Assembly (NCBI GenBank): GCA_002269645.1
Contig: NIVC01004727.1
Location: 1 to 36,934, forward strand
From: Macrostomum lignano
Lineage: Eukaryota
Reading direction: 5' to 3'
DNA: 36,934 nt
Numbering within the stretch: the stretch's first letter is position 1; every line of letters begins with the position of its first letter. The notes beneath the pieces are model-generated. The model saw only the letters and a list, made by a program, of their open reading frames with translations. It was not told the DNA's origin and searched no databases. Made by a program: the position numbers and the translations under genes. Shown here in pieces: positions 1-34,036 of this stretch.

Positions 1-2386
1 GCAGCAGCTGACGGGCCGACCTTCGTCTGTCGGGGCTACGAGCTGTCCGCGCCAGGTTTCAACATCGAAGCCATCGAAGGTGAACTCGGCCTGGCTTGAA
101 AATCGGACCGGCGCTGATGAAGCTGGACCTCAGCTCCAACCAGTTGTCCCTGCTCGACCAGCCTCACTTTGCCTCGCTGCCGAACCTGCACCGGCTTGAG
201 CTGGGCTCCAACCAGATCAGGTTGATCTCGCACCGGCTGTTTGACGGTCTCAAGCAGCTCATCTTTCTGGACTTGGACAACAACCAGCTGCCTGAAGTTA
301 CTCAGGCCACATTCGGGTCTCAGCGAGTGTTCAGCCCTGGCAACCAGTGCAACCTGCGCTCCCTGCTCTACCTCTACTTGGCTAACAATCGTATCGAACG
401 CGTCGATCCCAACAGTTTTGATTGCATGTCGCGGCTCAAAGTGCTCAACTTGCAGCGCAATCTAATTAAGGTGCTGCCGGAATCCACCTTCTCCGGTCTC
501 AGCTCCATCACTAGCCTGAAACTGTATGCTAACCGCATTGACACGGTGCGGGACTCCGCATTCAGCCAGTGCTGCCGGGAGCTGAGATACCTCAGCTTAG
601 TTGACAATCGAATCTCCCATCTGTCGCGTACAATTTTCAACTTCATGGGCAATTTGACTTCGCTCTACCTAGACCGGAACCAATTCGTCCAGGTGCCAAC
701 CTACCTGCTGGCCTACGCAGCCGGCCTCGGGCCAGCCAGCCTCTCCGACGTCCATATTCAGCGCAACCACATCGTGCGCATCCGGAAGAACGACTTCCGG
801 GACGCTGGAAAGATCGACGCTCTGAACTTGTTCGATAACAGCATCCAGCGCATCGAGGACTACAGCTTCGCCAGCCTGTCCTGGACAAGAAGCCTCATCC
901 TACAGAAGAACGAACTTCGCACAATTAACAACCGAACGCTAGCTGGCTTGTCCAACCTTCGCTATCTGGTACTCACGCAGAATCACATCGAATTCGTGGA
1001 AGACTACGCGTTCACTCCGCTGGTCCGCTTGGACACTCTTTCAATAGCGTCGAATCGTCTTACGGAAGTTCGTCAGCTAATGTTCGTCGGACTAAATCAC
1101 ACCTTCTCGTTGAACCTGGCGTCCAACTATATCCAATCGCTGCGCGGGACGAGTTCCAGCTGTTGCCGAGCCTGCGCTATCTGTACCTGGAGAAAAATCA
1201 GCTGATGCGAATCAGGCGCGGCTACTTTTCGGGTCTCACCGGTCTGCGCAAGTTGGACCTCAGCGACAATCGCTTGAACGAGCTGGAGACTCAAGCCTTT
1301 GCCGATCTCGATGAGCTAGCCTTTCTTGACCTCAGTGGAAACAACTTGGAGACCATTTGCTCCGCCAGTCTTCAGGGCCTACGGAGCCTGCAGTCTTTGT
1401 TCCTATCGAAGAACCGTATCGATGCACTGGACCCAACACTGCTAGCCAGTCTTCCCGCGTTGAGCGTGCTCGACCTTCGAGACAACCGCCTGGCCGAATT
1501 CTCCATCAACTGGCCGCTGCCATCCGCCGCAGTGGCCAAAGCTCGTCCTGGCCAGGCGCTGACCCACCTCGACCTCGGCGGGAACAGACTTCGTCTGACC
1601 GACACCGACGGTTGCGGCTTCTGCGGCCTCGACTCGGTCCGTTTCGCCAGCCTGGGCGTCGAGCTGAGCAGCGTCGCTCAGCTGACTGCCGACAGTCTGC
1701 GTGGCCTCGGTGGGCCCGGGCTCGACCTCATCATCAACGAGAAACAGTGGCCACCGGCAGCAACGGCCGCTGCGGCCTCCACGGCAGCCGAGTGTCGAGT
1801 CGCTTGCAAATCGCGGCAGCAGCTGCAGCAGCTACCGAAGGAGCTGACCGACAGAGCCTGCCGGTCTAGACTCAGCCAAGGTCGAAGCAACGTCGCTGGC
1901 GCCGCGGACGCCACCTTCGGCACCGCAGCTGCAGGCGGCGGCAGCTTCGCTCGCCTGATGCTCTACGTGTCTCTGCCGGCCCTGCTGCTGCTGATCCTGG
2001 CCGTGGCCTCCGTCAGCGGATTCTATCTGATGGCACGTCGTCGTCGACGTCAGCGAAGCGCCGCCGCAACAAGAGCAGCGGCAGCGGCGTCTGGTGGTTA
2101 CCATGTCGACCAGCAGCAGTTGCAGCATCTGGGCATGCAGAGCGTGCTGGGCCAGCAGCAGCAACAGCTTGCTGGGCCTCCACTGTTGCCGCAGTCTCAG
2201 TCGCAGCAGCACCTGCAGATGCGAAATCACGGTCATCACCAGCATCACCATCGTCAGCAGCAGCCGCAGCCTGGAATGTCAGCCTACGACACTGAGCCAA
2301 GCCTACTGGAGATGAGCATGGAGCTGACGCCATCAAATTCCGACGTGAAGTTCAATAGCAAAGTGTATGGCAATTTGCTTTCGTGA
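1..2386 (+). CDS. LRR single-pass transmembrane protein, intronless, 5'-truncated by the window edge, with two apparent 1-bp deletions (~96 and ~1146)
   Basis: ORFs 96-1205 and 1163-2386 contain many LxxLxLxxNxL repeats. These are followed by a hydrophobic helix (LMLYVSLPALLLLILAVASVSGFYLM), a stop-transfer RRRRR and a Q/H-rich tail ending VYGNLLS. Frame 1 (1-96, AAADGPTFVCRGYEL...) joins if one T is added at gct-tg; the LRR register is restored if one base is added at cgc-ggg-ac (LRxDEFQLLPSLRYL). Confidence 0.8.
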
Positions 2387-3720: not shown

Positions 3721-3891
3721 TGTTAAAGAAATAATCAAGTCTAATTGATCTGAGGGTTAGACTTTAACAAAAAAACAGGTAAATGAGCCCTGTGGCTAAA
3801 TTATTGCATATATATTAAATTAAATCGATGTTCTCTCTCTCCAACTCTCTAACTCATCAACGCCTCACGCACATCAACCCCACCCCAACAC
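3721..3891 (-). repeat. Inverted copy of the 3' 171 bp of the BEL LTR
   Basis: Reverse complement of 7729-7899 with 4 mismatches by manual alignment. Confidence 0.9.
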
Positions 3892-4920
3892 GTCCGATCC
3901 TGTCTCCCATCGCAGCCCGAGGACTTTTGACGATACGCCATCTTCGCCCAAGGAGGCGGCTGAATAGCTGGAGGGGTCCTCCGTGATGTCCTTTGTCACC
4001 GCCGACAACGCCGGAGCAAGAACATCACTGTCTAGTGTGCTGGCGCGAACCGCTTTCAATACATTCTTGCTGTTGGACTGCCAGTGTCGCAGATTCATTC
4101 CAGCCTGTTGGAATATGTGCCGGGATTTTTGGATGAGATCCAGGGCCTGCTGTTCATCCACGCACCCAGAGATCAGGTTGTCCACATAGATTTCTTTGGA
4201 CACCTTATCCACGAACTCTGCATGCTGGCCTCGGTGAGATGCCAAGTGGTGTTGAATGACAGTCTCCAGGACGGCAGGTGAGCAGGTGAGTCCGAACACC
4301 AGAGCAGCGTAGCGCAGAACAACGAGAGGTGAATCAGCTTGACTGGGATCCCGTGGCCAGAGGAATCGTAGAGCATCGCGATCGTCTTCTGCAATTCGGA
4401 TCTGCAAAAAAGCCTTCTCAATATCGGCAGTCAAGGCGATCGGATGAAGTCGAAAGGCCTGAAGCAGTCGCGGAATCTCGGCCAACGAACAGGTTCCTGT
4501 TTCCAGACAGTCATTCAGCGATGGACTGCACTGATCTCGCTTGGCACTCGCGTCGAAAACCACTCGAACTTTGGTCGATTCAGCTTCAGGACGGATTACG
4601 GCTCGGTGGGGTAGGTAGTGGATGAGATCGCTGGTCCCATCTGGAGCTTCTTCGACTACGCCAGCTTCCTTCTGACTGGTCAGAATGCGGTGGTACTCCT
4701 GAAGTAGCGCAGGCTCACGACGCAGCCTCGTCAGATTGGTCTTTAGTCTCTTGAACGCTACCTCGAAGTTGTCGGGCAATCTTAATTCCTTTTTGGGAAT
4801 CTTCCACGGCAGCTGAACTGAGTAGCGACCCTCTTGGAACTGGGCATTCAGAGTCAGTGGACGCTGATCAGGCTCGGCTGCACTTCTGATGCCGAGACCT
4901 TCTAAAGTCCAGAACGCCTC
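3887..4920 (-). pseudogene. BEL/Pao pol fragment: reverse transcriptase (inverted segment)
   Basis: Reads EAFWTLEGLGI...LPW...YLPHRAV...KVRVVFDAS...SLNDCL...ADIEKAFLQI...FGLTCSP...YVDNL...VLGLRWETGSD, typical Pao RT motifs. Confidence 0.9.
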
Positions 4921-7292
4921 GTGTTCGTGCTGCAGTTTTCTCCGCCAGAAGATTTGCTCAAGGCGTCGCCCTCCAAGCGTGTCGTGCTACAGCTGCTGGC
5001 CCGTGTCTACGATCCTCTGGGCTTCCTGGTTCCGCTGCTTACGTTGCCGAAATCGATGTTCCAGAAGCTGTGCGTTGAAAAGATCGCTTGGGACTGCCCG
5101 CTAAAGGAGCCGATTAAGCAGCAGTGGCTGAAGTGGTTGCAGGAGATGCTGGCAGGTCGATTTCAAGTTCCAAGGTTGGTGCTTTCGGCGACGAAGGAGG
5201 TCGAGGAGATACAGCTGCATGGGTTCTGTGATGCGTCAATCAAATGCTATGCGGCGTGTCTTTACCTGCGAGTGCAGTACACCGATAGTTCCGTCAGCTG
5301 CAACCTGGTGGCCGCCAAGGCGAGAGTGGCTCCACTGTCGGTTCTTTCAATTCCTCGGCTCGAACTCCTGGGTGCCTTGATACTCGCCAGACTGTTGACA
5401 TCATCCATGAGTCAGTATCCTCATGTTCGCCAGGTGTTTTGCTGGACAGACAGTGCCGACACGCTCTACTGGATCCGGCAGCACAGACCCTGGAAGCTCT
5501 TTGTTCATAATCGGGTGACGGAGATCCGCCGCCTGGTGCCAGAGGATGCCTGGAGACATGTCCCAGGCGAGGAGAATCCGGCGGACGTTGCATCTCGAGG
5601 AACATCAGCGAGCAAGTTGAAGGCGGACGACAGCTGGTGGCACGGTCCAGACTGGCTGGCACGACCTCCTGACGATTGGCCCGACCAATCCTTTCTCAGC
5701 TTACCGACAGCGGCAGTTGCCGAGGAGCAAAAGACACAAGTGAACCGTCCAGTTGTTCTGCTAACTGAAGCCGGTCCTGACATCAGTCTACAGGAAGTTC
5801 TCAATGACACGAACTTCTCATCCTGGATCAAGCTGATTCGGGTGACAGCCTATGTCCTACGCTTCGTCAGAAACCTGCAAGCTAGAACTTCTGCAGCGGG
5901 GGAGGAGCGAGTGGGACCACTGGCTGCAGCAGAAGTCCTTGAAGCTGAAGAGCGCTGGCTGCGAGAAGTGCAGAAACGGAGTTTTCAAGCCGAAATTGCT
6001 CACATTCAGGAGTCAGCGGCCAGTACAGATCTCAGCAGGCAGTTGAATCTTTTTCTCGACAACAAGAGTATTCTCCGAAGCCAAGGTCGATTGAAGGAGT
6101 CCAACGCCTCTGCCGAGGTTGACTGTCCGATTCTGATCCGAGCAAGTCACACCTGGAGCTTCTTCTCATCTGGGACGCTCACGCCAAGGTTCTGCACGGG
6201 GGAGTGCCCAGCACTCTTTGTAAGCTGCGAGAGAGATTCTGGCTAATCAGAGGAAGACAGCGAGTCAAGTCGATCCTGAGAAGTTGCTTTGTCTGCAGAC
6301 GTCTTCAAGGACTACCATATGCAGTGAAGCAAATCCCAGCCTTACCTGAAGCACGCGTGAAGTCTGGGAGAGCCTTTGAGTGGTGCGGACTCGACTACTG
6401 CGGACCTGTCAAACTGATGGAGGACACAGAGATCGAGAAAGGCTATATCCTGGTTTTCACCTGTGCGGCCACGCGAGCCCTTCACCTGGAACTGGTGAGC
6501 GACTTGACGACCGAGACCTTCCTGCGAGCCCTCCGACGGTTCTGTGCTCGGAGAGGAATTCCCAATCTCATCAGTGACAACGCCAAGACATTCACCAAGG
6601 CTGCCAAAATACTTCAGGCGTCGGAGAGTCGACAAGTTCAAGACTTCTGCGCCACCAGGAAAATCACCTGGCAATTCATCGTCGAACGCGCACCGTGGCA
6701 AGGAGGCTTCTGGGAGCGACTGATGAGGGACATCAAGCTGGCTTTGCGCAAGACCATCCTCAACGCAACCCTGACGCTGGACGAACTGCGGACAGTGCTA
6801 ATGGAGGTGGAAGCGGTGCTCAACAGTCGGCCTCTACTCTACGTGGATGCCGAAACCAACGGAGAAGTCCTGACGCCGGCGCACTTTCTGGTCCTGCAAC
6901 GGCTGACGGCGGAGCCAACTTCTAGCGGTACGCCCGAGCTCCTGCTGCCGTTGCCAACACTGCTGAGGCGAATGCGCGCCAGACTGCAAGCCTTCTGGGA
7001 CTGCTGGGAGCGACAGTATCTGACCAGCCTGCGAGAACATAATCTAAGTCCCAAGCATGGCGTAACTCGAGAAGCGACGGCCGGCGACATCGTCCTGGTG
7101 AAAGGTGAGGCCGGGCAGCCGAGGCTTACCTGGTGTACCGGTGTCATCGAGTCGGTGCATCCTGGCCGAGACGGGGCGGTGAGATCTGCAACGGTTCGAG
7201 TCGCGCCCAGACCTGGCCGCGGTCCCAGGAGATGCTTGATTCGCCGACCGGTGGAGAACCTGATTTTGCTGGAAGCTGTGAAAACTGAATGA
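4921..7292 (+). pseudogene. BEL/Pao pol fragment: RNase H/Pao linker, HHCC zinc finger, integrase core and C-terminal domain; one frameshift near 6150
   Basis: Motifs YDPLG, LHGFCDAS, IPRLELLGA, WTDS, NPAD; then HAKVLHGG...CFVC, GLDYCGP, SDNAKTF, GGFWERL, GDIVLVK, RPVENL. Confidence 0.9.
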
Positions 7293-9554: not shown

Positions 9555-9850
9555 TCCATGGCTCATATAGTTATCCTTTTTGACTCATGAACATTCTCAG
9601 CTATGGCTCATAATAATCTTTTATGACGATCATAATCCTCTATGACTCCAAATTATCTTTTATGACTCATAATCTTTCTCTATGACTCACAATTGTATTT
9701 TATGACGATCATAATCATTCTCTATGACTATAAATTATCATTTATGACTCATAAATATACTCTATGACTCACAATGATCTTTTATGACTCATAATCAATC
9801 TCTATGACTCACAATTATCTCAATGACTCACAACCGTTCTTTATGACCCA
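9555..9850. repeat. Degenerate ~20 bp tandem repeat with a TATGACTCA(T/C)AAT core
   Basis: The TATGAC core recurs about every 20-21 bp. Confidence 0.8.
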
Positions 9851-10006
9851 CACAACTATCCATAATTTTAAGCCATACCCCTTTGCTAAATAAGGAGCTC
9901 AAGAGACAGTAACAACAGAGTAAGCATTTATCTGAATATTATCGAACTTCAAATTGTTCGGCCACGAATTCCAGTAGTTATGCAACTCATAAATCCATTT
10001 GTCCAA

Positions 10007-10703
10007 TCAGATTTTCGAATAATTCTCCCTGCCTTTGCACAGGCAGCTCCGAATAGTCTTGAAGCTGAACTCGAACCCATCCTTGATCAGCAGAGCCAGG
10101 TGACACCAGAACTGCCCATTCGGTAGCAGATCGGCGCCACTTCTGCGCCGCACGAGGCCGTTAATGAGCATAGAAACCAGGATGTACAGGGCCACGGAGA
10201 GGCAAAATAGAAGCACAATGACATCGCCCGGGCTCCAGCCAGTGTTGCCACCACTCGGGCTGGGGGTCAGGCAGCAGTAGCGCGAGTGCAAGTCGAATGT
10301 CAGATTGTAATTGCCGCCGTCTGTCAGGACCACGTTGGAAATGCGACCATCTTCGGTTGCGTTGCAAACAAGTCGGACTGTGCTCAGGATGGGCTTGAGC
10401 GGGAGCTGGCTGCTGCCTTTGTAGCGCAGCCTCAGGGAGGACGGCGGCTGACCCTCGATTCTGCTGCTGTTCTGCTCGCCTGCGGGTAGATAGATAGATA
10501 GATAGATAGATGGATAGATAGATAGATAGATAGATGGATAGATAGATAGATAGATAGATGGATAGATAGATAGATAGATAGATGGATAGATAGATAGATA
10601 GATAGATAGATGGATAAATAGGTAGATAGATAGATAGATAGATAGATGGATAGGTAGGTAGATAGATAGATAGATAGATATATAGATAGATAGATAGATA
10701 GAC

Positions 10704-10785
<82 letters not shown>

Positions 10786-10831
10786 GTAGATAGATAGATA
10801 GATAGATATATAGATAGATAGATAGATAGAC

Positions 10832-10878
<47 letters not shown>

Positions 10879-10879
10879 C

Positions 10880-10949
<70 letters not shown>

Positions 10950-10971
10950 GTAGATAGATAGATAGATAGAG

Positions 10972-11013
<42 letters not shown>

Positions 11014-11014
11014 G

Positions 11015-11088
<74 letters not shown>

Positions 11089-13218: not shown

Positions 13219-14450
13219 ATGGATCCACTATTTCAAGCTTTGAGCCTTTTTCGCCGAAGAAAATATGAAAAATGCATTGAAAAATGCACAGAAATACTAG
13301 ACAAGAATTCGTATGATGAGGTAATTAGTACAAATTGATCTTTTTCACTAAAAGTTTCTTCCAATTCCATTGAGGTAGTTCGTCAATTCTGAGAAATGCA
13401 CAATTTTTTTATTAACTGTGAGTATGATGCAAATTTTGCGTGTTGCTGTTTATTGATTAAAATGCATGCTTTAGTTATAATTTAAAACCATATGATTTTT
13501 ACACCATTGTAACAAAAATATTAAAAAGTGGCATCTAGAATTTATTGCTTTTTGTAGACAAATGATACAGAATATATACAAGTTAATTTACTCTTTTAAT
13601 TCAAAATTATTTGTATAAAACAGGATAAAGTATACACAAAATATTTTTATTAATTTAAGGTCTTAATATTGCATTATATCAGACTGCTATTTACCTTCTA
13701 TTATAAAATTGGCAAAAAATGCAATTTTAATTTTGTCTAAATTGATAATAAAATAACCTCCATAATCTATTTTCTTTCTCATTCTTTTCTACAGAAAACC
13801 ACTATAGTTTTAAACTTGTTAATAAAGATTCACATATACAATGACGTACACTTCCAGTAGTATAGAGCGCATTTTAAAAAAAGAGAATTTCATTGCATAA
13901 ATTTAAAACAGGCCGCTTGGCTTCTGAAGATGCAGGCCCTCACCGAGCAGGTCTACGTTGACGATATTGAAAATGACGAGGACGGCATGGCCGAGGGCCT
14001 CCTGGACGACTCCGCCATCGCTTCTGTGGCCCGGCCGGGCACCTCACTGAGGGTTGCCACCGCTGGCGGCGGCTCTGGAGGCCTGCAGCAGGCGATGCGG
14101 CCGTCCACTCAGTCTGGCCGGCCCGTCACCGGCTTCGTCAGGCCCGGCACGCAGGGCTCCGGGGCCGGCTCGCTGGAACAGGTCTGCCTGTGTCTGCCTG
14201 TGTGTCTGCCTGTGTGTCTGCCTGTGTGTCTGCCTGTGTGTCTGCCTTTGTGTCTGCCCGTGTGTCTGCCTGTGTGTCTGCCTGTGTGTCTGCCTTTGTG
14301 TCTGCCTTTGTGTCTGCCTGTGTGTCTGCCTGTGTGTCTGCCTGTGTGTCTACCTGTGTGTCTGCCTGTGTGTCTGCCTGTCTGTCTGTCTGCCTGTCTG
14401 TTTTAGTGTCTGTCTGTCTGTCTGTCTGTCTGTCTGCCTGTCTGTCTTAG

Positions 14451-14487
<37 letters not shown>

Positions 14488-17400
14488 GCCTGTCTGCCTG
14501 TCTGCCTGTCTGACTGACTGTCTGTCTTAGTGTCTGTCTGTCTGTCTGTCTTAGTGTCTGTCTTAGTGTCTGTCTGTCTGTGTGTCTGTCTGTCTGTCTG
14601 TCTGTCTGTCTGCCTGTCTGCCTGTCTGCCTGTCTGTGTTATTAGCCTGTCCATAAGCCTGTGCCCGCACTTCACTCATGAATACCCTAACCCTTCCCCA
14701 TCAAACCCTCTCTCAGGCTCTGAAGACGCCTCGAACCGCGTCGAACGCTCGCCCAGTGACGTCATCATCTGGCCGGCTGGTCCGTCTTGGCACAGCCTCC
14801 ATGCTGAGCAGCCCGGATGGACCCTTCATCAATTTGAGCCGATTGAACTTTTCCAAATACGCCCCAAAACCGCAGATGAGTCGGGCGCTATTCGAGTACA
14901 TTTTATATCACGAGAACGACGTTAGAACGGCTCTTCAACTTGCTGCCATGGCGACAGAGGCGCACCAGTTCCAGGACTGGTGGTGGAAGCTGCAGCTGGC
15001 CAGGTGCTACTACAAGCTGGGCCTGTTCAGAGACTGCGAGCAGCAGCTGCGATCTGCCATGAAGCAGCAGGAGTGCCTGGAAAGCTATTTGTTGCTAGGC
15101 AAAGTGTACACCAAGCTCGACCAGCCGCTTGCGGCCATAGACAACTACAATCAGGGCCTCACTAAGTTTCCCAACGACCGCTGTCTGCTTACTGGATTGG
15201 CTCGGATTCAGGAGGTTGGAGACTCTTCGAGTGGCTTGGGGATTGGGGTTGGATTAAGGTTTAGGGTTGGATTAAGAATTAGGGTTAGATTAAGGATTAG
15301 GTTAAACTAAGGATTACAGGGCTAGATGAAGGATTAGGGCTAGATTGGAGATTAAAGTTAGATTTAGTATTAGAGTTAGAGGTTGGAATATGGCAGAGGG
15401 CGGATTGGGGGAGCGGCCAGATCGGGGCAGAGGGCGGATTGGGGGAGCGGCCAGATCGGGGTAGAGGCCAGATCGGGGCAGAGGGGCGGATCGGGGCAGA
15501 GGGGCGGATCGGGGCAGAGGGGCGGATCGGGGCAGAGGGGCGGATCGGGGCAGAGGGGCGGATCGGGGCAGAGGGGCGGATCGGGGCAGAGGGGCGGATC
15601 GGGGCAGAGGGGCGGATCGGGGCAGAGGGGCGGATCGGGGCAGAGGGGCGGATCGGGGCAGAGGGGCGGATCGGGCAGAGGGGCGGATCGGGCAGAGGGG
15701 CGGATCGGGGCAGAGGGGCGGATCAGATGACGTGTTTCGCACCGCCTCTCCCCCACAGGGCCTGGGCAACCTGGAGAAAGCTGCCGAGTGCTACAAAGAT
15801 GTTCTTCGCTACGACGCCATGAATGTGGAAGCGTTGGCGTCCATAGCAACCCAATATTTCTATAACGACCAACCTGAGCTGGCTCTGAAACTCTACAGGT
15901 GAGGGGAGAAGAGCAGAAAAGAGCAATTCCTCCGACTCTCATCACCGCAGGCTGTGGTAGAGAGACTGGTAATTTTCCTCAGAGATTCGTCTTCCTGCCC
16001 GACATCCCCATGCAGTTCGGCCGGCCCTAGAAACCCCTCAGGCCTCCAAAAGAATTATTTTTTACAGTCTCGAGTTTCAAATCCGAGAAGGCTTGCTTCC
16101 TGAAATTAATATTCTTTCCCGTCGAAGAGAGATGCAGAAGCGGTTTCAATTGCTATTCGATTCTGAAGGTGCCGTTAGGTCTGCATGCTGACGTCTTCGA
16201 AAACTACCAGCTTCACTTCTTGACTGACTGGCAGCAAGTGACAGATGTCAGACAAATTTTGGCAAACCTTTTGTATTGCGTGCCAGCGAAACCTCTAATT
16301 CGTTCTAGGATGGGTCATCAATGACCCTAGGTCATCAATGACCCTAGGTAATCAATGACCCTAGATAATCAGTGACCCTAGGTAATCAATGACCCTAGGT
16401 CATCAATGACCCTAGGTAATCAATGACCCTAGATAATCAGTGACCCTAGGTAATCAGTGACCCTAGGTAATCAGTGACCCTAGATAATCAGTGACCCTAG
16501 GTAATCAATGACCCTAGGTAATCAATGACCCTAGGTAATCAATGACCCTGGGTAATCAGTGACCCTAGGTAATCAATGACCCTAAGTCATCAATTACCCT
16601 AATTCATCAATGATCCTAATTAATAAATGACCCTAACTCATCAATGACCCTAGTTCATCATGAATTTCTCATGACCCTAAATCGTTAAAAACCCTACGTC
16701 ATCAATGACCCTAAGTCTTCATGACCCTAACTCATCAGTGACCCTAAGTCTTCATGACCCTAACTCATTAATGACCCTAAATCATTAATGACCCTAAATC
16801 GTTAATGACCCTAGGTCATCAATGACCCTGGCCTAAGTCTCCAATGACTCATTTCTAATGACCCATTATTTCATGAGCCATGCTTAAAAAAATACTATTT
16901 CCAGACGGCTGCTTCAGCTGGGCCTCGCCTCTGCCGAGCTCTACACCAACTTGGCCCTGTGCTGCTTCTACGCTCAGCAGTACGACATGTGCCTGACCTG
17001 CTTTGACCGCGCCATCACCGTGGCTAAGAAGGAGGAGCTGGCTGATGTGTGGTACAACCTGGGTCACGTGGCATTGGTGAGACAGTCTGGGAGTTCAAAG
17101 CTGCTTAAATTAAATAGTGTATATGATTCAGGGCAAAGGTAGAAAACAGTGAGTATTGAGTAGATCACAGTGAGTAGAGAGTAGATTAAAGTGAGTAGAG
17201 AGTAGGTTTCAGTGAGTAGAGAGTAGGTTACAGTGAGTAGAGAGTAGATAACAGTGAGTAGAGAGTAGATTACAGTGAATAGAGTAGATTACAGTGAGTA
17301 GAGAGTAGATTACAGTGAATAGAGTAGATTACAGTGAGTACAGAGTAGAATACAGTGAGTAGAGAGTAGATTACAGTTAATAGAGTAGATTACAGTGAGC

Positions 17401-19216
17401 AGAGAGTAGATTACAGTGAGTAGAGAGTAGATTACAGTGAGTAGAGAGCAGATTAAAGTGAGTAGAGAGTAGATTACAGTGAATACAGTACGAGTAGATT
17501 ACAGTGAGTAGAGAGAAGGCTATAACTTACAGAAGAAAGTGTAGAGGTGAGACAAAACTTCGCCCTTCAAATGTACCCCTAGCCCCACCTTTTCAAGGTG
17601 AGACGCAGATTTCCTTTCAAAGCAGCGTGACCTAGCCGCTAGCTGTGCTGCTTAACCTGAAAATTCACTCAGAAGAACAGCTGCTTAATTCTTGTTATCC
17701 AAAGATAACCCAAGGAAAAATAAACTTGGGATGTTATGTACTTTTACAGTTACTTGCTTGCTTGTATGACATATTCCCAGATAGAAAGAGTAGGATATGA
17801 TTGGTGAAATCTGAGAGAGTTTGAGATCAAAATTGACGAGACAGAAAGGGTTTTAGATGAAGGGATGGGCATGAAGAGATGGACAGGAAGGAACGTGAGA
17901 TGAAGGGATGGACAGGAAAGGATGCGAGATGAAGGGATGAACAGGAAAGGATGCGAGATGAAGGGATAAACATGAAGTGATAAGCATGAAGGGATAAACA
18001 TGAAGTGATAAACATGAAGGGATAAACATAAAGGGATAAACATGAAGGGATGCACATGAAAGGATGGACAGAAAGGGATGTGAGATGAAGGGATGGAAAG
18101 GAAATGATGTGAGATAAGGAGATAGACTGGAAGGGATATGAGATAAAGGGGTGTGAGATGAAGGGGTGCGAGATAAAGGGATGGACAAGAAGGGGTGTGA
18201 GATGAAGGGGTGTGAGATGAAGAGGTGTGAGATAAAGGGATGGACAAGAAGGGGTGTGAGATGAAGGGGTGTGAGATAAAGGGATGGAAAAGAAGGGGTG
18301 TGAGATGAAGGGGTGTGAGATGAAGGGGTGTGAGATAAAGGGATGAATAAGAAGGGATGTGAAATGAAGGGGTGTGAGATGAAGGGGTGTGAGATGAAGG
18401 GGTGTGAGATGAAGGGGTGTGAGATGAAGGGGTGTGAGATGAAGGGGTGTGAGATGAAGGGGTGTGAGATGAAGGGGTGTGAGATGAAGGGGTGTGAGAT
18501 GAAGGGGTGTGAGATAAAGGGATGGACAAGAAGGGATGTGAGATGAAGGGGTGTGAGATGAAGGGGTGTGAGACAAAGGGATGGACAAGAAGGGATGTGA
18601 GATGAAGGGGTGTGAGATGAAGGGGTGTGAGATGAAGGGGTGTGAGATGAAGGGGTGTGAGATGAAGGGGTGTGAGATGAAGGGGTGTGAGATGAAGGGG
18701 TGTGAGATAAAGGGATGAATAAGAAGGGATGTGAGATGAAGGGGTGTGAGATGAAGGGTTGTGAGATAAAGGGATGAATAAGAAGGGATGTGAGATCAAG
18801 CAAGGACAGAAAAGTACACAGTTACACATGGAGACTTCCGCTCTGATTCAAGCCACTTTCCTGACGGCACCAATCCGACTGCCTTCCCGCAGGCGGTGGG
18901 AGACCTCAGCCTCTCCTACCAGGCGTTCCGCTTGGCCCTATCCTACAACAACGATCACGCGGAGGCCTACAACAACTTGGGAGTGCTGGAACTGCGCCGC
19001 AACAATCTGGAGATGGCGCGCTCGTTTTTTCAAGCCGCCAGCACCCTCAGCCCGTCGATGTTCGAGCCGCACTACAATGTGGCAATCATGGCTGAGCGCA
19101 TGGGTGACCTTCAATCAGCCTACCAGTCGGTCAATCGGGCCCAGCAGTTTTTCCCCAACCATTCCGACTCCAAGGATATGCTGAATGCGCTTAAAGTACA
19201 TTTCTCTGAGATTTAA
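13219..19216 (+). CDS. BBS8: Bardet-Biedl syndrome 8 / TTC8 BBSome TPR subunit, 501 aa; exons 13219-13320, 13912-14181, 14717-15214, 15759-15898, 16905-17076, 18893-19216
   Basis: Recognisable BBS8 sequence: MDPLF..LSLFRRRKY..C..SYDE|AAWLLK..ALTEQVYVDD, RPGTSL, RP.TQSGRP.TGF.RPGT, TPRTA..ARP.TSSSGR.VRLGTASM, followed by TPR repeats. All exons join in phase via GT-AG (1506 nt). Confidence 0.95.
14182..14637. repeat. BBS8 intron 2: 12-bp (TGTGTCTGCCTG)n grading into (TGTC)n
   Basis: The array begins at the donor GT itself. Confidence 0.95.
15235..15385. repeat. BBS8 intron 3: degenerate GGATTAGGGTT-like repeat
   Basis: Loose ~17-18 bp periodicity. Confidence 0.6.
15396..15724. repeat. BBS8 intron 3: 18-bp G-rich minisatellite GAGGGGCGGATCGGGGCA
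   Basis: Near-perfect units from ~15466, with diverged units upstream. Confidence 0.95.
16312..16830. repeat. BBS8 intron 4: 17-bp minisatellite ATGACCCTAGGT(C/A)ATCA
   Basis: Tandem array, homogeneous at the 5' end and degenerate at the 3' end. Confidence 0.95.
17147..17515. repeat. BBS8 intron 5: ~21-bp minisatellite CAGTGAGTAGAGAGTAGATTA
   Basis: Tandem array with shorter 19-bp variants. Confidence 0.92.
17855..18797. repeat. BBS8 intron 5: purine-rich 15-bp minisatellite GTGAGATGAAGGGGT with longer variants
   Basis: Tandem array, most homogeneous at 18360-18515 and 18590-18710. Confidence 0.93.
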
Positions 19217-19453: not shown

Positions 19454-20820
<1,367 letters not shown>

Positions 20821-21098
20821 AACTTTATTTGGATATGTTGTGTCCCCATTCGATGAGCTTTGACAGTTAATTAACACAGTGGCAGCCCTACAACCTGTGG
20901 TTATACGACCTACAATTCTTGTCTCAGTGCTGCGTGATTAGGAGCCGTATTTGTCCCCGGGGCTGCAGCAGGGAGCGAGTTGTTTTTATTAGAGAGCTGC
21001 ACAGATGAGAATTGAGGAGTATGTGGGAAGCTATCTATGTATTCATCTATCTCTTATCTAAGTAAGATAAGTAAGTCTCATTGAGTGACGTCAAGTGC

Positions 21099-21104
21099 TT
21101 TATT
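21099..21104 (-). terminator. Candidate polyadenylation signal AATAAA for the neuropeptide gene
   Basis: TTTATT on the + strand about 130 nt beyond the stop codon. Confidence 0.45.
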
Positions 21105-21232: not shown

Positions 21233-21754
21233 TTAGTTCCGGTCGGAATCTCCTGCGCTCAAGCCGCGCTTCCAGAACGGAGCTCGCTTCCAGAACGGAG
21301 CCCGCTTCCAGAATGGGGCGCGCTTCCAGAACGGAGCCCGCTTCCAAAACGGAGCTCGCTTCCAGAACGGAGCCCGCTTCCAGAATGGGGCGCGCTTCCA
21401 GAACGGAGCCCGCTTCCAAAACGGAGCTCGCTTCCAGAACGGAGCCCGCTTCCAGAACGGAGCTCGCTTCCAGAACGGAGCGCGCTTCCAGAACGGAGCC
21501 CGCTTCCAGAACGGAGCCCGCTTCCAAAACGGAGCTCGCTTCCAGAACGGAGCCCGCTTATTTTCGCCATGCAGTCCAGCAGTCCACCGAGCGATGATTT
21601 TCTTTGTCACATCCTCATTCAGGATACTACCGGTACTGCGCATCTCCCGTGTCAGGTGCCTGCTGGTGCTTTCCAAAGCGGAGGAGGCGTCATCCACTGC
21701 AACAACCGCTAGAAGGACCGATGCGAACAACAATGTCAGCGACAACCTTGGCAT
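21233..21754 (-). CDS. Neuropeptide precursor, 173 aa, with a signal peptide and 16 tandem APFW-KR units
   Basis: Starts at ATG with a hydrophobic signal peptide (MPRLSLTLLFASVLLAVVA), then a spacer, then KR-(APFW-KR)x16 and GLSAGDSDRN-stop. Unit-to-unit variation is synonymous only. Confidence 0.9.
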   Translation of the reverse strand: MPRLSLTLLFASVLLAVVAVDDASSALESTSRHLTREMRSTGSILNEDVTKKIIARWTAGLHGENKRAPFWKRAPFWKRAPFWKRAPFWKRAPFWKRAPFWKRAPFWKRAPFWKRAPFWKRAPFWKRAPFWKRAPFWKRAPFWKRAPFWKRAPFWKRAPFWKRGLSAGDSDRN

Positions 21755-22106
21755 TGTAGCGCAGGTTTCACTGCAACATAGATTGAAAAATTCAAACGTA
21801 CCTGGTATATTACGAGCGTAAAAGTCTATACGATGACATCTGAACGTGAATGCATCAAAGACATGTTTACCTTAAAGGCTTTCGATACAGTCAATAATTC
21901 ACAAAATATTTTGCCGCTAATCCGCCTTGTTGACTCAGAGTGGGGCGAGCGGAGCGACCGTGAATTACCGACTTTATAAGATGCTGGTGGATTGTCAGCC
22001 TTTGCCGATTTGCTGGAAGTCTGTGAGCTCTGGTTGGCTCGATGAATACGGATCTTTTGAGGGCTCGTGTCTTCGTTGTCTGCTTCCTGTCTTCTGAAAT
22101 TTTTTC

Positions 22107-23516: not shown

Positions 23517-23902
23517 CGACTCCCCCCTCCAATTGCGGAGCTCGGAGAAAACAGACTGTAACCGAAGTCTTAAATGGTTGAATAGCTTATATGATCAAAA
23601 CGAAGCGGGTAGGACAGTTGAAATAAATTCTACATGAGAAATCGAACATTAAAAAAAGAGAGAATATTGAGAAAAACTGTCAGAAGACGTTATACGTTAC
23701 AAAGGTTAATAATAAATGTAATCATTTTGGCGAAAAATAACAAAGAACTTGTCGGTTCGCTGTTTCACGCGATACGGCCCTGAGTACGGCCCTCGAGCGG
23801 CGACCGCACACGATCGACCCGAACCCAGACGAATTCAGCCATTTTCAGGTCCTTGGGTACGTAGCTCCGTGGTTCGTGCGTCGTCGCATGTGGACTCGGT
23901 AG

Positions 23903-28955: not shown

Positions 28956-30745
28956 ATGCAGATGTCCTTAGCCACAAGCACTGCTGTCTTGCTGATAAGC
29001 GCTGCCATTTTGGCCAACTTCTTTACACACGTGGAGTCCCGTAAGTTGACAACTCAAGATGTTTTCTTGTGTGTTGCTTTTACTGCCGAATTTCAGATGA
29101 TGTCAATCCTACATTGAATTAATTATCTGTCATAAGTCCACCTAGGAAAAAACATACAAGTTAAGTAACTATTTTGTTAAATTTAGCTTAAAATTCTTTA
29201 GCGAGGAATTGGGGGGTCCGTAGGGAATAGCTGAGATGTCAAGACTCAGAGTATGATTGCTGAAATGCTGTGGCTCAAGACTCCTGGAAGAATCGCTTCA
29301 ATTCCAAAGCCCAAAAGGGGGTGCTGTCATGCTGATATCAACTAACAATAGTAACTGTAAAAGGTCAAAAGCCGCATGTTCTAGTTTATTCAAAAAATTG
29401 ATTCCTTACCTTTTGCTTCCCCCAATGAGGGGCGAAGATTGCTAGTCCTATATACTAAATATAGTCCTTATGTATATCCTTAATGTATCTTCTCCAACGG
29501 GTTTTTCTTGACCAAACCTTATGCAGCGCACTATCAAAAATGAAATATTTGCGAAATCTGCTTCATTACTCTTCATTTAGTCTTCTTTTCAATTTTGTCG
29601 TCATTGGAAATAAGCATCGAAAAGCACACATTTGGTTTGTTTTCAAAATAACAAAAACTATCTGGGAATTCAAAATGCATAAATCTCGAGGATTAATTGC
29701 TCAAAAGTTGAGAAAGTTCCACCTCGAGAATGCATTTTGAACCGAAACTGGTTTTCAGTGAAAGTTTCTTGTGCGAGTGTAGCACATTTCTAATTGTGCA
29801 GTTCGATATTTCTCCTATCGCTGTCAGAGTGCTACATATTTTACCTATAATGCGTTTACTTTAACAACATATCACCATCTATCAATACACCCAGTTCGCA
29901 AAAAAAATTGTCAAAACAATTTCAGTCATGATCAGCAAAAAATGTAAGTCTTTTCTTCTTTAAAATTATTCTGCAAATACGTGCACTCGTGGTATAGGCG
30001 TTGCTGCATTTGCAAGCCGCGCAATATCCCCCATTCTGACAATAAAGTTTTTGCCATAGACTACGATGCGGAGGGGCAAAGGAGCTCAACGTTGAACGCG
30101 TCTGACTCCTTCGCCACGAACGTGGAGGAAGGAATAGAATGGAGTGCTAATCTGTGCCAGTTATTTTTGTCTCGCTCGATCGACCTTCACTTTTTTAGCA
30201 TCCCTTTCCTCCCGTTCCTTCCTATTGGCTACATTTATACATTTCAGAGGTAAATGTATGTCCCACAACGGCAACGTCTGCACAGAAAATGAGTGCTTAT
30301 ATTATTTAATTGCTTTACCTAATTGCTCTGATGTGACTTTAGACTGAGACCTACTCACATTGCCGGTAGAGAGTAGTGGGCAACGCAGCGTGTTGGCACT
30401 TTTAACTGTATTATTTTCAGTCGTCTCATGCATTTTTCAGACGAGTACCAAGGTTGCTTCGTACATGCCCGAGAAGCACAAGCAATACCGTTAGGGCACA
30501 AAGTGGACAACTCGTCCAAAATGACTGCGGACGTCTGCGCTGAGGACTGCAGCTGGAATGACTACGCTTACTTCGGGCTAAAGTCCGGTTCAGAGTGCTG
30601 GTGCGGCAACCGAATTAACTCAATCAAAATTTCATTCAACTTTTGCAACAGGATTTGCAATGGCAACTTCCAAGAAACATGCGGCGGGAGCAGTCATGTG
30701 CAAATTTACAAGGGAGTCAGTCTTGCCAGCTTGAAGAAAAAGTAA
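28956..30745 (+). CDS. Secreted WSC-domain protein; signal-peptide exon 28956-29040, WSC exon from 30441; 3' end unresolved
   Basis: Exon 1 reads MQMSLATSTAVLLISAAILANFFTHVES and ends at a GTAAGT donor (phase 1). A phase-1 acceptor TTTTTCAG precedes EYQGCF...MTADVCAEDC...YAYFGLKSGSECWCGN...CNRICNGNFQETCGG, a canonical WSC cysteine pattern. Intervening exons are not excluded. Confidence 0.75.
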
Positions 30746-30767
30746 GTCGCGTGCCATTGTTGAAACA

Positions 30768-31375
30768 CCTCTCTACTACAGCACTCCACTACAGCAACTC
30801 TCCACTACAGCACTCCACTACAGCATTACTCCACTACAGCACTCCACTACAGCACCTCTCCACTACAGCACTCCACTACAGCACCTCTCCACTACAGCAC
30901 TCCACTACAGCATTACTCCACTAGAGCACTCCACTACAGCACTCCACTACAGCATTACTCCGCTACAGCATTACTCCACTACAGCATTACTCCACTACAG
31001 CATTCCACTACAGCACTCCACTACAGCATTACTCCACTACAGCATTCCACTAAAGCTTTACTCCACTACAGCATTCCACTACAGCACTCCACTACAGCAT
31101 TACTCCACTACAGCATTCCACTACAGCACTCCACTACAGCATTACTCCCCTACAGCATTTCACTACAGCACTCCACTACAGCATTCCACTACAGCACTCC
31201 ACTACAGCATTACTCCCCTACAGCATTTCACTACAGCACTCCACTACAGCATTCCACTACAGCACTCCACTACAGCACTCCACTACAGCATTACTCCACT
31301 ACAGCATTACTCCAATACAGCATTACTCCACTACAGCATTTCACTACAGCACAACTCCACTCCACCACTCCACTA
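30768..31375. repeat. 13-16 bp minisatellite (ATT)ACTCCACTACAGC
   Basis: Tandem array directly after the WSC exon. Confidence 0.95.
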
Positions 31376-31728
31376 GTCAAGGACGGCTCCAACAAGATCC
31401 TACTGGACCAGGCTGCCAATAATGCGGCCGTACATAAGAGATTGTGGGCCAGTAGCTGCAACAACCAATGTTCATCTAACTTTTTCAGACTGCATATTAA
31501 TGACACAAAATGTTTCGGAATGCTCGTGTTTGAAATATTGCTCTCTGATCAATCTAATAACCCAAAGCTGCATTCATGATGTGAGAGCCGATAAAGCCAC
31601 AAATAAACTGATTTCGTGCAATCTCAGCCTTTCCTTTTTCCGTTAAAATTTCTTTGACAAACTCTCGGCTGATGCTGAGACAGCATGTCATTACTGTGTA
31701 TTGAATTGCTCGCATTTAGGAGCTAAAT

Positions 31729-33622: not shown

Positions 33623-34036
33623 TCATTCGATCTCGTTGACATTTTTCACGATCCAGTCTACCAGTCGCTGTTTGATGCTATCGTAGCTCATGTTCTCAAA
33701 GTTCAGGTCGAGTCGCAGCGGCTCGTACTCAAAACCGGACGGTGCCCACATCTGCACGTAGGGCACGGTGACTACGTCCTTCACCTCGGGTATGTTTGGC
33801 CGCTGACATTTTGACGTGTCAAGTGCAGACATTCGGATGGCCAGCTTGGCGTTAACCAGGCCCTTGGACTTCCACTGGCCTAATGACCATCTGCTCAGAT
33901 CGTCGAAAATCGGTATGAGCTTACTCTGACAGATCTGGCAGGTCTGGGCGCTGTAGAGCAGCACCTCGACTCGCTGGCTTCTGTACTTGTAGCGCACAAT
34001 CTCCTCTGCGCTGATCCAGGCTAGCGAGGCAGCCAT
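33623..34036 (-). CDS. Small thioredoxin-fold protein (137 aa) with a CQIC motif; may be a terminal exon
   Basis: VEVLLYSAQTCQICQ..LIPIFDDLS matches the strand-CxxC-helix pattern; VTVPYVQMW fits the cis-Pro loop position. Uninterrupted GC-rich ORF. Confidence 0.6.
   Translation of the reverse strand: MAASLAWISAEEIVRYKYRSQRVEVLLYSAQTCQICQSKLIPIFDDLSRWSLGQWKSKGLVNAKLAIRMSALDTSKCQRPNIPEVKDVVTVPYVQMWAPSGFEYEPLRLDLNFENMSYDSIKQRLVDWIVKNVNEIE

Follow-up and report, generated by a model that had tools for sequence, protein, structure and literature searches.

Whether a tandem repeat that spells the same few residues again and again belongs to a gene is the question raised by this locus of Macrostomum lignano. 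Simple and tandem repeats account for 15% of the M. lignano genome (PMC5730564), and the window, meaning the whole 36,934-nt (37 kb) stretch of contig NIVC01004727.1 of assembly GCA_002269645.1 that was analyzed, carries 34 TRF rows, two (TAGA)n arrays, and BEL/Pao and Gypsy-type retroelement ORFs. Many of its minisatellites are open in at least one frame and give meaningless ORFs of 100-480 aa. In so repeat-rich a window and genome, an ORF across a tandem repeat is no evidence of a gene, and a minisatellite null needed testing. Our conclusion is that the locus is probably a real, compact, single-exon M. lignano gene whose product is a secreted prepropeptide of a flatworm '-FW' family, with neuronal or neuroendocrine signaling as its most likely role.

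The predicted precursor and its surroundings

The ORF listing has one ATG-initiated frame of 173 aa at 21233..21754 on the minus strand. The frame, its predicted parts and the flanking motifs read from the sequence are as follows.

21973..21978, minus strand: TATAAA, candidate core promoter, about 220 nt upstream of the ATG
21771..21801, minus strand: possible 31-nt 5'UTR intron, GTACGT...TTGCAG (speculative)
21233..21754, minus strand: coding sequence of the APFW precursor, complete, single-exon, 173 codons, stop codon at 21233-21235
21698..21754, minus strand: predicted signal peptide, residues 1-19, MPR followed by LSLTLLFASVLLAVVA; cleavage by the -3/-1 rule between AVVA and VDD, position approximate
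21560..21697, minus strand: pro-region or spacer, residues 20-65 (46 aa), containing the KK-flanked IIARWTAGLHGEN
21560-21598, minus strand: IIARWTAGLHGEN, residues 53-65, bounded by KK and KR
21554..21559, minus strand: first dibasic KR, residues 66-67, immediately ahead of copy 1
21266..21553, minus strand: 16 head-to-tail APFW-KR units of 18 nt each, residues 68-163
21236..21265, minus strand: C-terminal tail GLSAGDSDRN, residues 164-173
21099..21104, minus strand: AATAAA, candidate polyadenylation signal, about 130 nt past the stop codon

The predicted protein reads MPRLSLTLLFASVLLAVVAVDDASS...TKKIIARWTAGLHGEN-KR-(APFWKR)x16-GLSAGDSDRN-stop. Its N-terminal part is non-repetitive over 67 residues, with the stretch MPRLSLTLLFASVLLAVVAVDDASSALESTSRHLTREMRSTGSILNEDVTKKIIARWTAGLHGEN preceding the first KR and 16 unbroken APFWKR units following it. 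The array starts exactly after that KR, and the frame shuts ten codons beyond the array. One KR site stands ahead of copy 1 and one behind every one of the 16 copies; a Gly before KR is absent from all 16 units, and the 173 residues include no cysteine. A signal peptide followed by KR-(APFW-KR)x16 is what the first-pass annotation had described, and its coordinates, strand, copy number and flanking peptides proved exact.

The predicted signal peptide consists of a basic n-region, MPR, and a hydrophobic core of 16 uncharged residues (4-19); the highest Kyte-Doolittle 12-residue mean, 2.97, falls on residues 9-20. Signal-peptide calls were made with a simple heuristic of our own, applied to all ATG-initiated ORFs in the window that reach 60 aa, and only one of these 57 ORFs, the APFW precursor, passed it.

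The APFW frame lies in a 1.3-kb unique island, with (TAGA)342 on one side and a 45-bp minisatellite on the other. The TTGCAG that would close the possible 5'UTR intron is placed 16 nt ahead of the ATG and might, speculatively, be only a spliced-leader acceptor instead; trans-splicing affects 38.8% of the genes in M. lignano (PMC5730564). Searching the window for Rfam families and tRNAs gave no matches. The M. lignano genome is neopolyploid. Two contigs of GCA_002269645.1 encode, without a difference, the 137-aa product of an ORF at 33623-34036, and one of them, the Mlig_3_7 contig NIVC01002656.1, is 99.7% identical to the window across 13.3 kb. Matching sequence from the two contigs concerned reaches window positions 23638 and 22911, 1.2-1.9 kb short of the APFW gene; NIVC01002477.1 ends ahead of the gene, and the NIVC01002656.1 counterpart would fall near 4.9-5.4 kb. 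The neighboring 218-aa WSC gene allows from 555 to 85,171 possible GT-AG models.

Relatives and family assignment

Relatives were collected with a word index, with phmmer run in full and with a profile that included the window protein; that profile retrieves the tapeworm proteins at E values from 1e-53 to 1e-7. The relatives span five tapeworm genera plus environmental and SRA assemblies and have a common architecture: a signal peptide, a spacer, and x1-11-FW units parted by KR without Gly. Their peptides are as follows.

ENA metagenome P0001: GKQFW, APFW, DPFW, EAFW, APFW, EAFW, EPFW and EAFW, with KR after each, and a DGN tail; GKQFW is QFW preceded by GK
Spirometra P0071, Schistocephalus P0137 and P0138, Dibothriocephalus P0139 and P0003: SPHFW, YHAFW, SPAFW, SAFW, ASFW
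Echinococcus P0140 and P0144, Taenia P0141 and P0145: SPFW, SSFW/SDFW, YGNQAFW, RANFW/RENFW
Logan (SRA) assemblies P0099, P0142 and P0143: -FW peptides of 4-11 residues, the longest (11 residues) in P0099

The tapeworm precursors annotated 'Neuropeptide', A0A068WEX8 (CDS16177.1) and A0A0R3W293, resemble the Macrostomum protein in having a signal peptide, a spacer and multiple FW-KR peptides without Gly, in being small and, where DNA was seen, in being single-exon. Tapeworm orthologues also occur in E. multilocularis, T. solium, Spirometra, Schistocephalus and Dibothriocephalus, and one Dibothriocephalus copy ends in APFW, as in Macrostomum. The spacer is acidic in the tapeworm members. Unit number ranges from 3 to 8 in the twelve relatives against 16 in Macrostomum, and the tapeworm precursors hold 3-6 varied peptides of 4-8 residues where Macrostomum has 16 identical tetrapeptides. 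Because their unit sequences differ, the relatives are not DNA tandem repeats. Their FWKR strings are written with varied synonymous codons, AGR as well as CGN codons serving for Arg. Inside each tapeworm order, about 85-88% of positions are invariant in the peptide region, compared with 42-47% in signal peptide and spacer; this conservation profile is classic for bioactive-peptide precursors.

When cut in silico at dibasic sites, every member yields repeat-unit fragments that all end in FW. Nine precursors, namely eight tapeworm proteins and Logan P0099, stop exactly at FW, which is strong evidence that the native end would be a free C-terminal Trp and not an amide. Free-acid APFW, which the first-pass annotation had predicted as the product, is thereby upheld, both by the missing Gly before KR and by the relatives that end ...FW-stop. 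The Macrostomum protein, in contrast to those of the tapeworms, continues past its last FW with KR and the 10-residue tail, and tails are also found in P0001 (KR-DGN) and P0143, so termination at the last FW is a tapeworm trait and not one of the whole group.

Across the relatives the F-W pair is invariant while A-P varies (SPHFW, SAFW, ASFW, SSFW, YGNQAFW, RANFW), and no Gly follows. On these sequences the core of the family is therefore FW-OH and not (P)GW-amide.

Two observations bear directly on membership. Behind its signal peptide and spacer, the Macrostomum protein has at least three units of x(1-11)-Phe-Trp with Lys-Arg, and neither it nor its relatives place a Gly between Trp and the basic pair. 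MAFFT alignment of the Macrostomum and tapeworm proteins gave no convincing conservation of signal peptide or spacer, as would be expected of fast-evolving spacers over that distance. What is shared is the FW-KR motif and the architecture, and short motifs can converge; the Macrostomum gene is thus a likely, rather than a proven, member of the flatworm '-FW' peptide precursor family.

The first-pass annotation could place the sequence in no described family and suggested a new one, a suggestion overtaken by the relatives in five tapeworm genera. In UniProt the E. granulosus protein A0A068WEX8 and the T. asiatica protein A0A0R3W293 are both named 'Neuropeptide', which is an annotator's label and not an experimental result, and with tapeworm orthologues so annotated the kind is already recognized. 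The Schistocephalus proteins are named 'RxLR effector protein' there, evidently automatically. What is new here is the Macrostomum member with its 16 identical copies; the family itself is already annotated.

Other sources were silent. Pfam-A at E <= 1 gave no family for the window protein, P0140, P0137 or P0143; a look-up of the exact 173-aa product found no record, and no fragments of it occur among 5.8 billion proteins. A protein-based metagenome scan found no relative, and a degenerate FWKRxxFWKR DNA scan of metagenomes found only chance single matches and translated minisatellites. The peptide strings of the family returned nothing relevant from the searchable open literature. Neither Collins 2010 nor the S. 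mansoni peptide papers examined contain these strings, and the FW family is not among the 30 npp genes of Taenia crassiceps (PMC11196405).

The reach of the family may be greater still. Among the best phmmer matches (E = 1.6e-22) are the 'FY-KR' precursors P0008 and P0037 from Logan, which combine a signal peptide with 19-24 units of the kind APFY, AAFY or SSFY between KR sites, P0008 ending ...SFY-stop. They differ in having Tyr for Trp, a far greater length and a Cys-rich N-terminal part, and their relationship is unproven; together with the environmental relatives, they make a distribution wider than the flatworms possible. Most units of the closest relatives start with X-Pro or X-Ala (AP, DP, EA, EP, SP), so that an X-prolyl dipeptidyl peptidase could trim the active product to the dipeptide FW. 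It is tempting to speculate, although we regard it as rather doubtful, that free-acid peptides ending in Phe-Trp constitute an old signaling family, flatworm-wide from Macrostomorpha to tapeworms and possibly wider, whose product is perhaps trimmed to FW.

Predicted products and alternative readings

We propose a route to the product that follows established prohormone biochemistry. The signal peptide would be taken off, a PC2/furin-type convertase would cut behind each Lys-Arg, and a carboxypeptidase E/D-type enzyme would strip the K and R. Amidation would not follow, as there is no Gly donor. Each precursor would then release 16 copies of APFW free acid (computed monoisotopic mass 519.248, [M+H]+ 520.256), one spacer fragment and one 10-residue tail, and the tetrapeptide is predicted to act through a receptor in neuronal or neuroendocrine signaling. 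M. lignano possesses an essential homologue of prohormone convertase 2, with expression in the nervous system (PMC4490696).

Two further ideas of the first-pass annotation concern the products. It had named IIARWTAGLHGEN as a possible second peptide; the KK and KR flanks on which this rested are real, and the segment is conserved in no relative. It had also pointed to the FWK string that incomplete trimming would leave, as in somatostatin and urotensin. Peptides of the somatostatin/urotensin II type carry an F-W-K-(T) core inside a disulfide-bonded ring, in a single copy at the C-terminus of the precursor. The APFW precursor, without cysteines, with a K that is part of the KR site and with 16 tandem copies, is of another kind, and a somatostatin-like motif was rejected.

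Tetrapeptides without an amide have a precedent among spiralians. Achatin-like precursors of molluscs and annelids (GFAD/GFFD) release multiple copies of a KR-flanked tetrapeptide that carries an aromatic residue and no amide, and are the best-known case of a free-acid tetrapeptide neuropeptide in that group. They differ from APFW in their G-[D-Phe]-x-D motif, acidic C-terminus and L-to-D isomerization.

That the APFW precursor is a neuropeptide precursor, and not simply a secreted one, is something we infer from sequence, and a non-neural secretory role is the main rival. The precursor would in that case be equally real, secreted and KR-processed, with its product made in a gland (prostate/seminal-fluid, pharyngeal, epidermal or adhesive) and serving as a pheromone, allohormone, antimicrobial or defensive peptide. 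Repeat precursors processed by Kex2 or furin are also found in non-neural settings, and the fungal Kex2-processed, alpha-factor-type precursors P0058 (Cadophora) and P0118 (Nemania) share the logic of a signal peptide and short aromatic repeats parted by KR. Those proteins belong to another kingdom and have acidic spacers between their copies, so they serve as an analogy only; identity with a fungal RiPP or pheromone precursor was rejected, the organism being a flatworm. The unprocessed repeat is rich in Trp, Arg and Lys (pI 12), a composition seen in antimicrobial peptides, and sixteen identical copies suggest bulk production. The tapeworm relatives, however, have just 3-6 short, varied copies and carry the 'Neuropeptide' label, and conservation of a C-terminal FW beside the cleavage site while the flanks vary is the pattern of receptor-binding signaling and not of bulk material. 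We therefore consider a gland product unlikely and favor a neuronal or neuroendocrine peptide.

A resemblance to molluscan APGWamide, raised by the first-pass annotation, leads to the reading of the locus as a highly derived spiralian APGWamide/RGWamide orthologue in which the amidation Gly was lost and G3 became F. The Tritonia tetraquetra precursor (ABU82758.1, P0066) is found by phmmer at E = 4e-6, and BLASTP pairs KRAPFWKR with KRAPGWGKR; both precursors place abutting, KR-flanked tetrapeptides, Ala-Pro first and Trp last, behind a signal peptide. The alignment, however, consists of the repeat motif KRAP.W..KR and a generic signal peptide only. In Tritonia Gly-Lys-Arg comes after APGW, which is amidated, whereas in APFW Phe replaces Gly3 and Gly-KR is missing from all 16 copies, as from all relatives, which keep F-W and not A-P. 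An orthologue of APGWamide is thus improbable, and the free-acid FW family is the better home for the Macrostomum protein.

It remains to weigh the possibility with which the question began, that there is no gene here and that an 18-bp minisatellite happens to be open in one frame beside a chance ATG. The 34 TRF rows of the window and their long, meaningless ORFs speak for it, as do metagenome minisatellites that translate by chance to GFWKRT or LSFWKR; those metagenome repeats in every case lack both start codon and signal peptide, features that the APFW frame has. TRF describes the repeat at 21262-21559 as having a period of 18 bp, 16.5 copies, 89% matches and 0% indels. A 17-nt unit pattern allowing at most 2 mismatches has 16 matches, all in the 18-nt register, against 0.01 expected from shuffles, and the translation is exactly APFWKR in 16 of 16 units. 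At the DNA level there are five versions of the unit, in the order a b c d / a c / a b d e / a b d e / a d. Only unit columns 3, 6, 9 and 18 vary, all of them third codon positions, and every change is synonymous (GCT/GCC, CCG/CCA, TTC/TTT and CGA/CGG/CGC, with TGG constant). At least five independent substitutions separate the units, and a unit admits 54 different single changes, of which only about 12 would be synonymous; we estimate the chance of so wholly synonymous a pattern without constraint at roughly 5e-4, ignoring mutation bias. The order of the unit versions indicates recent expansion by unequal crossing-over, including that of a 72-bp higher-order unit, during which the peptide stayed constant. 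A chance-open minisatellite would not account for the 67-residue non-repetitive N-terminus with a canonical predicted signal peptide, for an array that begins exactly after a KR and varies only synonymously without an indel, for the promoter and poly(A) motifs, or for non-repetitive relatives of the same architecture in other flatworms. We regard it as very improbable, and propose instead that one unit of a coding sequence was amplified in Macrostomum by unequal crossing-over and that selection may have kept the peptide invariant.

The synonymous-site argument backs coding, and alone it cannot fix the strand; read on the plus strand, the array gives (RFQNGA)16 with no more variation, automatically so, as the bases that differ fall on wobble positions there too. 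Features other than synonymous sites do set the strand. Coding on the plus strand, with the array as an internal exon for (RFQNGA)16 in a frame open over 21237-21821, has next to no chance and was rejected, that frame having no Met ahead of the repeat, no signal peptide, an opening right after a stop and no relatives found.

Implications for flatworm peptide signaling

A practical warning follows from the setting of the APFW gene: in a genome with 15% tandem repeats it looks like a minisatellite, and repeat masking may hide the gene, which would explain why no product is on record for the locus. M. lignano is a flatworm model in which transgenesis is available. RNAi knock-down has been applied in it as well (PMC4490696), and the APFW gene, with a predicted product that is high in copy number, free-acid and easy to detect, is a tractable entry to a peptide family otherwise present only as unstudied 'Neuropeptide' annotations.

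The tapeworms that carry the FW family, among them Echinococcus, Taenia, Spirometra and Dibothriocephalus, are medically important, and the receptor of the FW peptides would offer a candidate drug target specific to flatworms. The founding survey of flatworm neuropeptides, of 2009, was reportedly aimed at amidated peptides; if the relationship proposed here is real, a non-amidated class would be added to the flatworm neuropeptide catalogue. If the Macrostomum and tapeworm precursors are homologous, the family would reach an early-branching, free-living flatworm and would be older than the parasitic flatworms.

Tapeworm FW precursors and a possible FY-ending family

The public Dibothriocephalus latus protein among the tapeworm FW precursors (P0003) is chimeric: it joins two tandem paralogues that lie 5 kb apart on contig UYRU01043596.1 (L002, about 9778-10132 and about 15340-15669). 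The second of these is decaying, with units that read FWKQ, FWKH and FGKL and an end that reads ALFE, and this suggests that the duplicate is becoming a pseudogene. In Schistocephalus solidus, two FW-peptide precursors (P0137 and P0138) carry the UniRef name ‘RxLR effector protein’. This is an oomycete term, and an automatic pipeline almost certainly assigned it here in error, prompted by the signal peptide together with a short motif.

Further tapeworm examples of short, non-amidated, aromatic-ended peptides are provided by Taenia crassiceps, in which npp-29 holds one KR-MLYW-KR and npp-43 holds two ...SLAYF units, the final one placed at the stop codon (PMC11196405 supplement). Long precursors are also expressed in an organism sampled by public sequencing runs. 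They carry 19-24 units that are flanked by KR and end in Phe-Tyr (APFY, AAFY and SSFY among them), and are represented by P0008, present in three SRA runs (L008-L010), and by P0037. The C-terminal end of P0008 is ...SFY followed directly by the stop. These ‘FY’ precursors may be a sister family to the FW peptides.

Genes and retroelements around the APFW gene

Features of the window
96-2386 (+): leucine-rich-repeat (LRR) protein, two overlapping long ORFs (LRR_8 at E = 1e-72)
3874-4779 (strand opposite to the domains at 4921-7292): reverse-transcriptase fragment
4921-7292 (+): Peptidase_A17, integrase and DUF5641 domains of a BEL/Pao-type LTR retroelement
10487-11088: (TAGA)150 (TRF)
13930-15310 (+) and about 18774-19184: TPR-containing gene (TPR matches in Pfam)
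19454-20821: (TAGA)342 (TRF)
21237-21821 (+): antisense frame of the APFW array, (RFQNGA)16, open for 195 codons
23903-27650 (-): ORFs of a second retroelement, with integrase zinc-binding and core domains
about 28956-31630 (+): gene for a secreted WSC-domain protein (218 aa in the public call)
33623-34036 (-): 137-aa ORF (loci L003-L006)

The two LRR ORFs probably belong to a single gene in which the frame changes, or a short intron falls, near 1163-1205; the C-terminal part of its product is Gln/His-rich and transmembrane-like. We take an exon of the TPR gene to resemble Bardet-Biedl syndrome 4 protein, the Pfam support consisting of TPR matches only. The sequence flanking this exon, presumably intronic, is filled with minisatellites of 12, 18, 17, 21 and 15 bp.

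The BEL/Pao element (3874-7292) is rearranged or nested, since its reverse-transcriptase fragment lies on the opposite strand. The second retroelement lies upstream of the APFW gene, at a distance of 2 kb, and is probably Gypsy-like. Its ORFs are absent from the public gene calls and include, as judged by eye, protease-like and gag-like frames, the former giving no match in a Pfam scan.

The 137-aa ORF, likewise with no Pfam match, has identical coding in three contigs of the Mlig_3_7 assembly, two of which share 99.7% and 99.3% identity with the window. Such copies illustrate the duplicated, neopolyploid genome of M. lignano.

Repeats that imitate coding sequence

Minisatellites in environmental, eukaryote-like metagenome contigs (L038 2755-3120; L042, L019, L030, L053 and L054) translate to GFWKRT, LSFWKR, SGFWKR and similar strings. 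Their frames lack a start and a signal peptide and have stops on both sides. Their resemblance to the FW-KR motif is due to chance, and they make a serviceable negative control for it. The APFW array is also open on its antisense strand, as an invariant (RFQNGA)16. This frame has neither a Met before the repeat nor a signal peptide and is a by-product of wobble-on-wobble overlap.

Minisatellites are extremely abundant across the window, where TRF gives 34 rows whose periods run from 4 to 190 bp. Within the range of the WSC gene, a 13-bp minisatellite (30771-31375) is open in all three frames, giving STTALHYS-like repeats. Many of the window's minisatellites have one to three open frames, from which spurious ORFs arise, (IYLS)n among them, with lengths of 100-480 aa. 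Open minisatellites are a pitfall for any ORF-based reading of the M. lignano genome.
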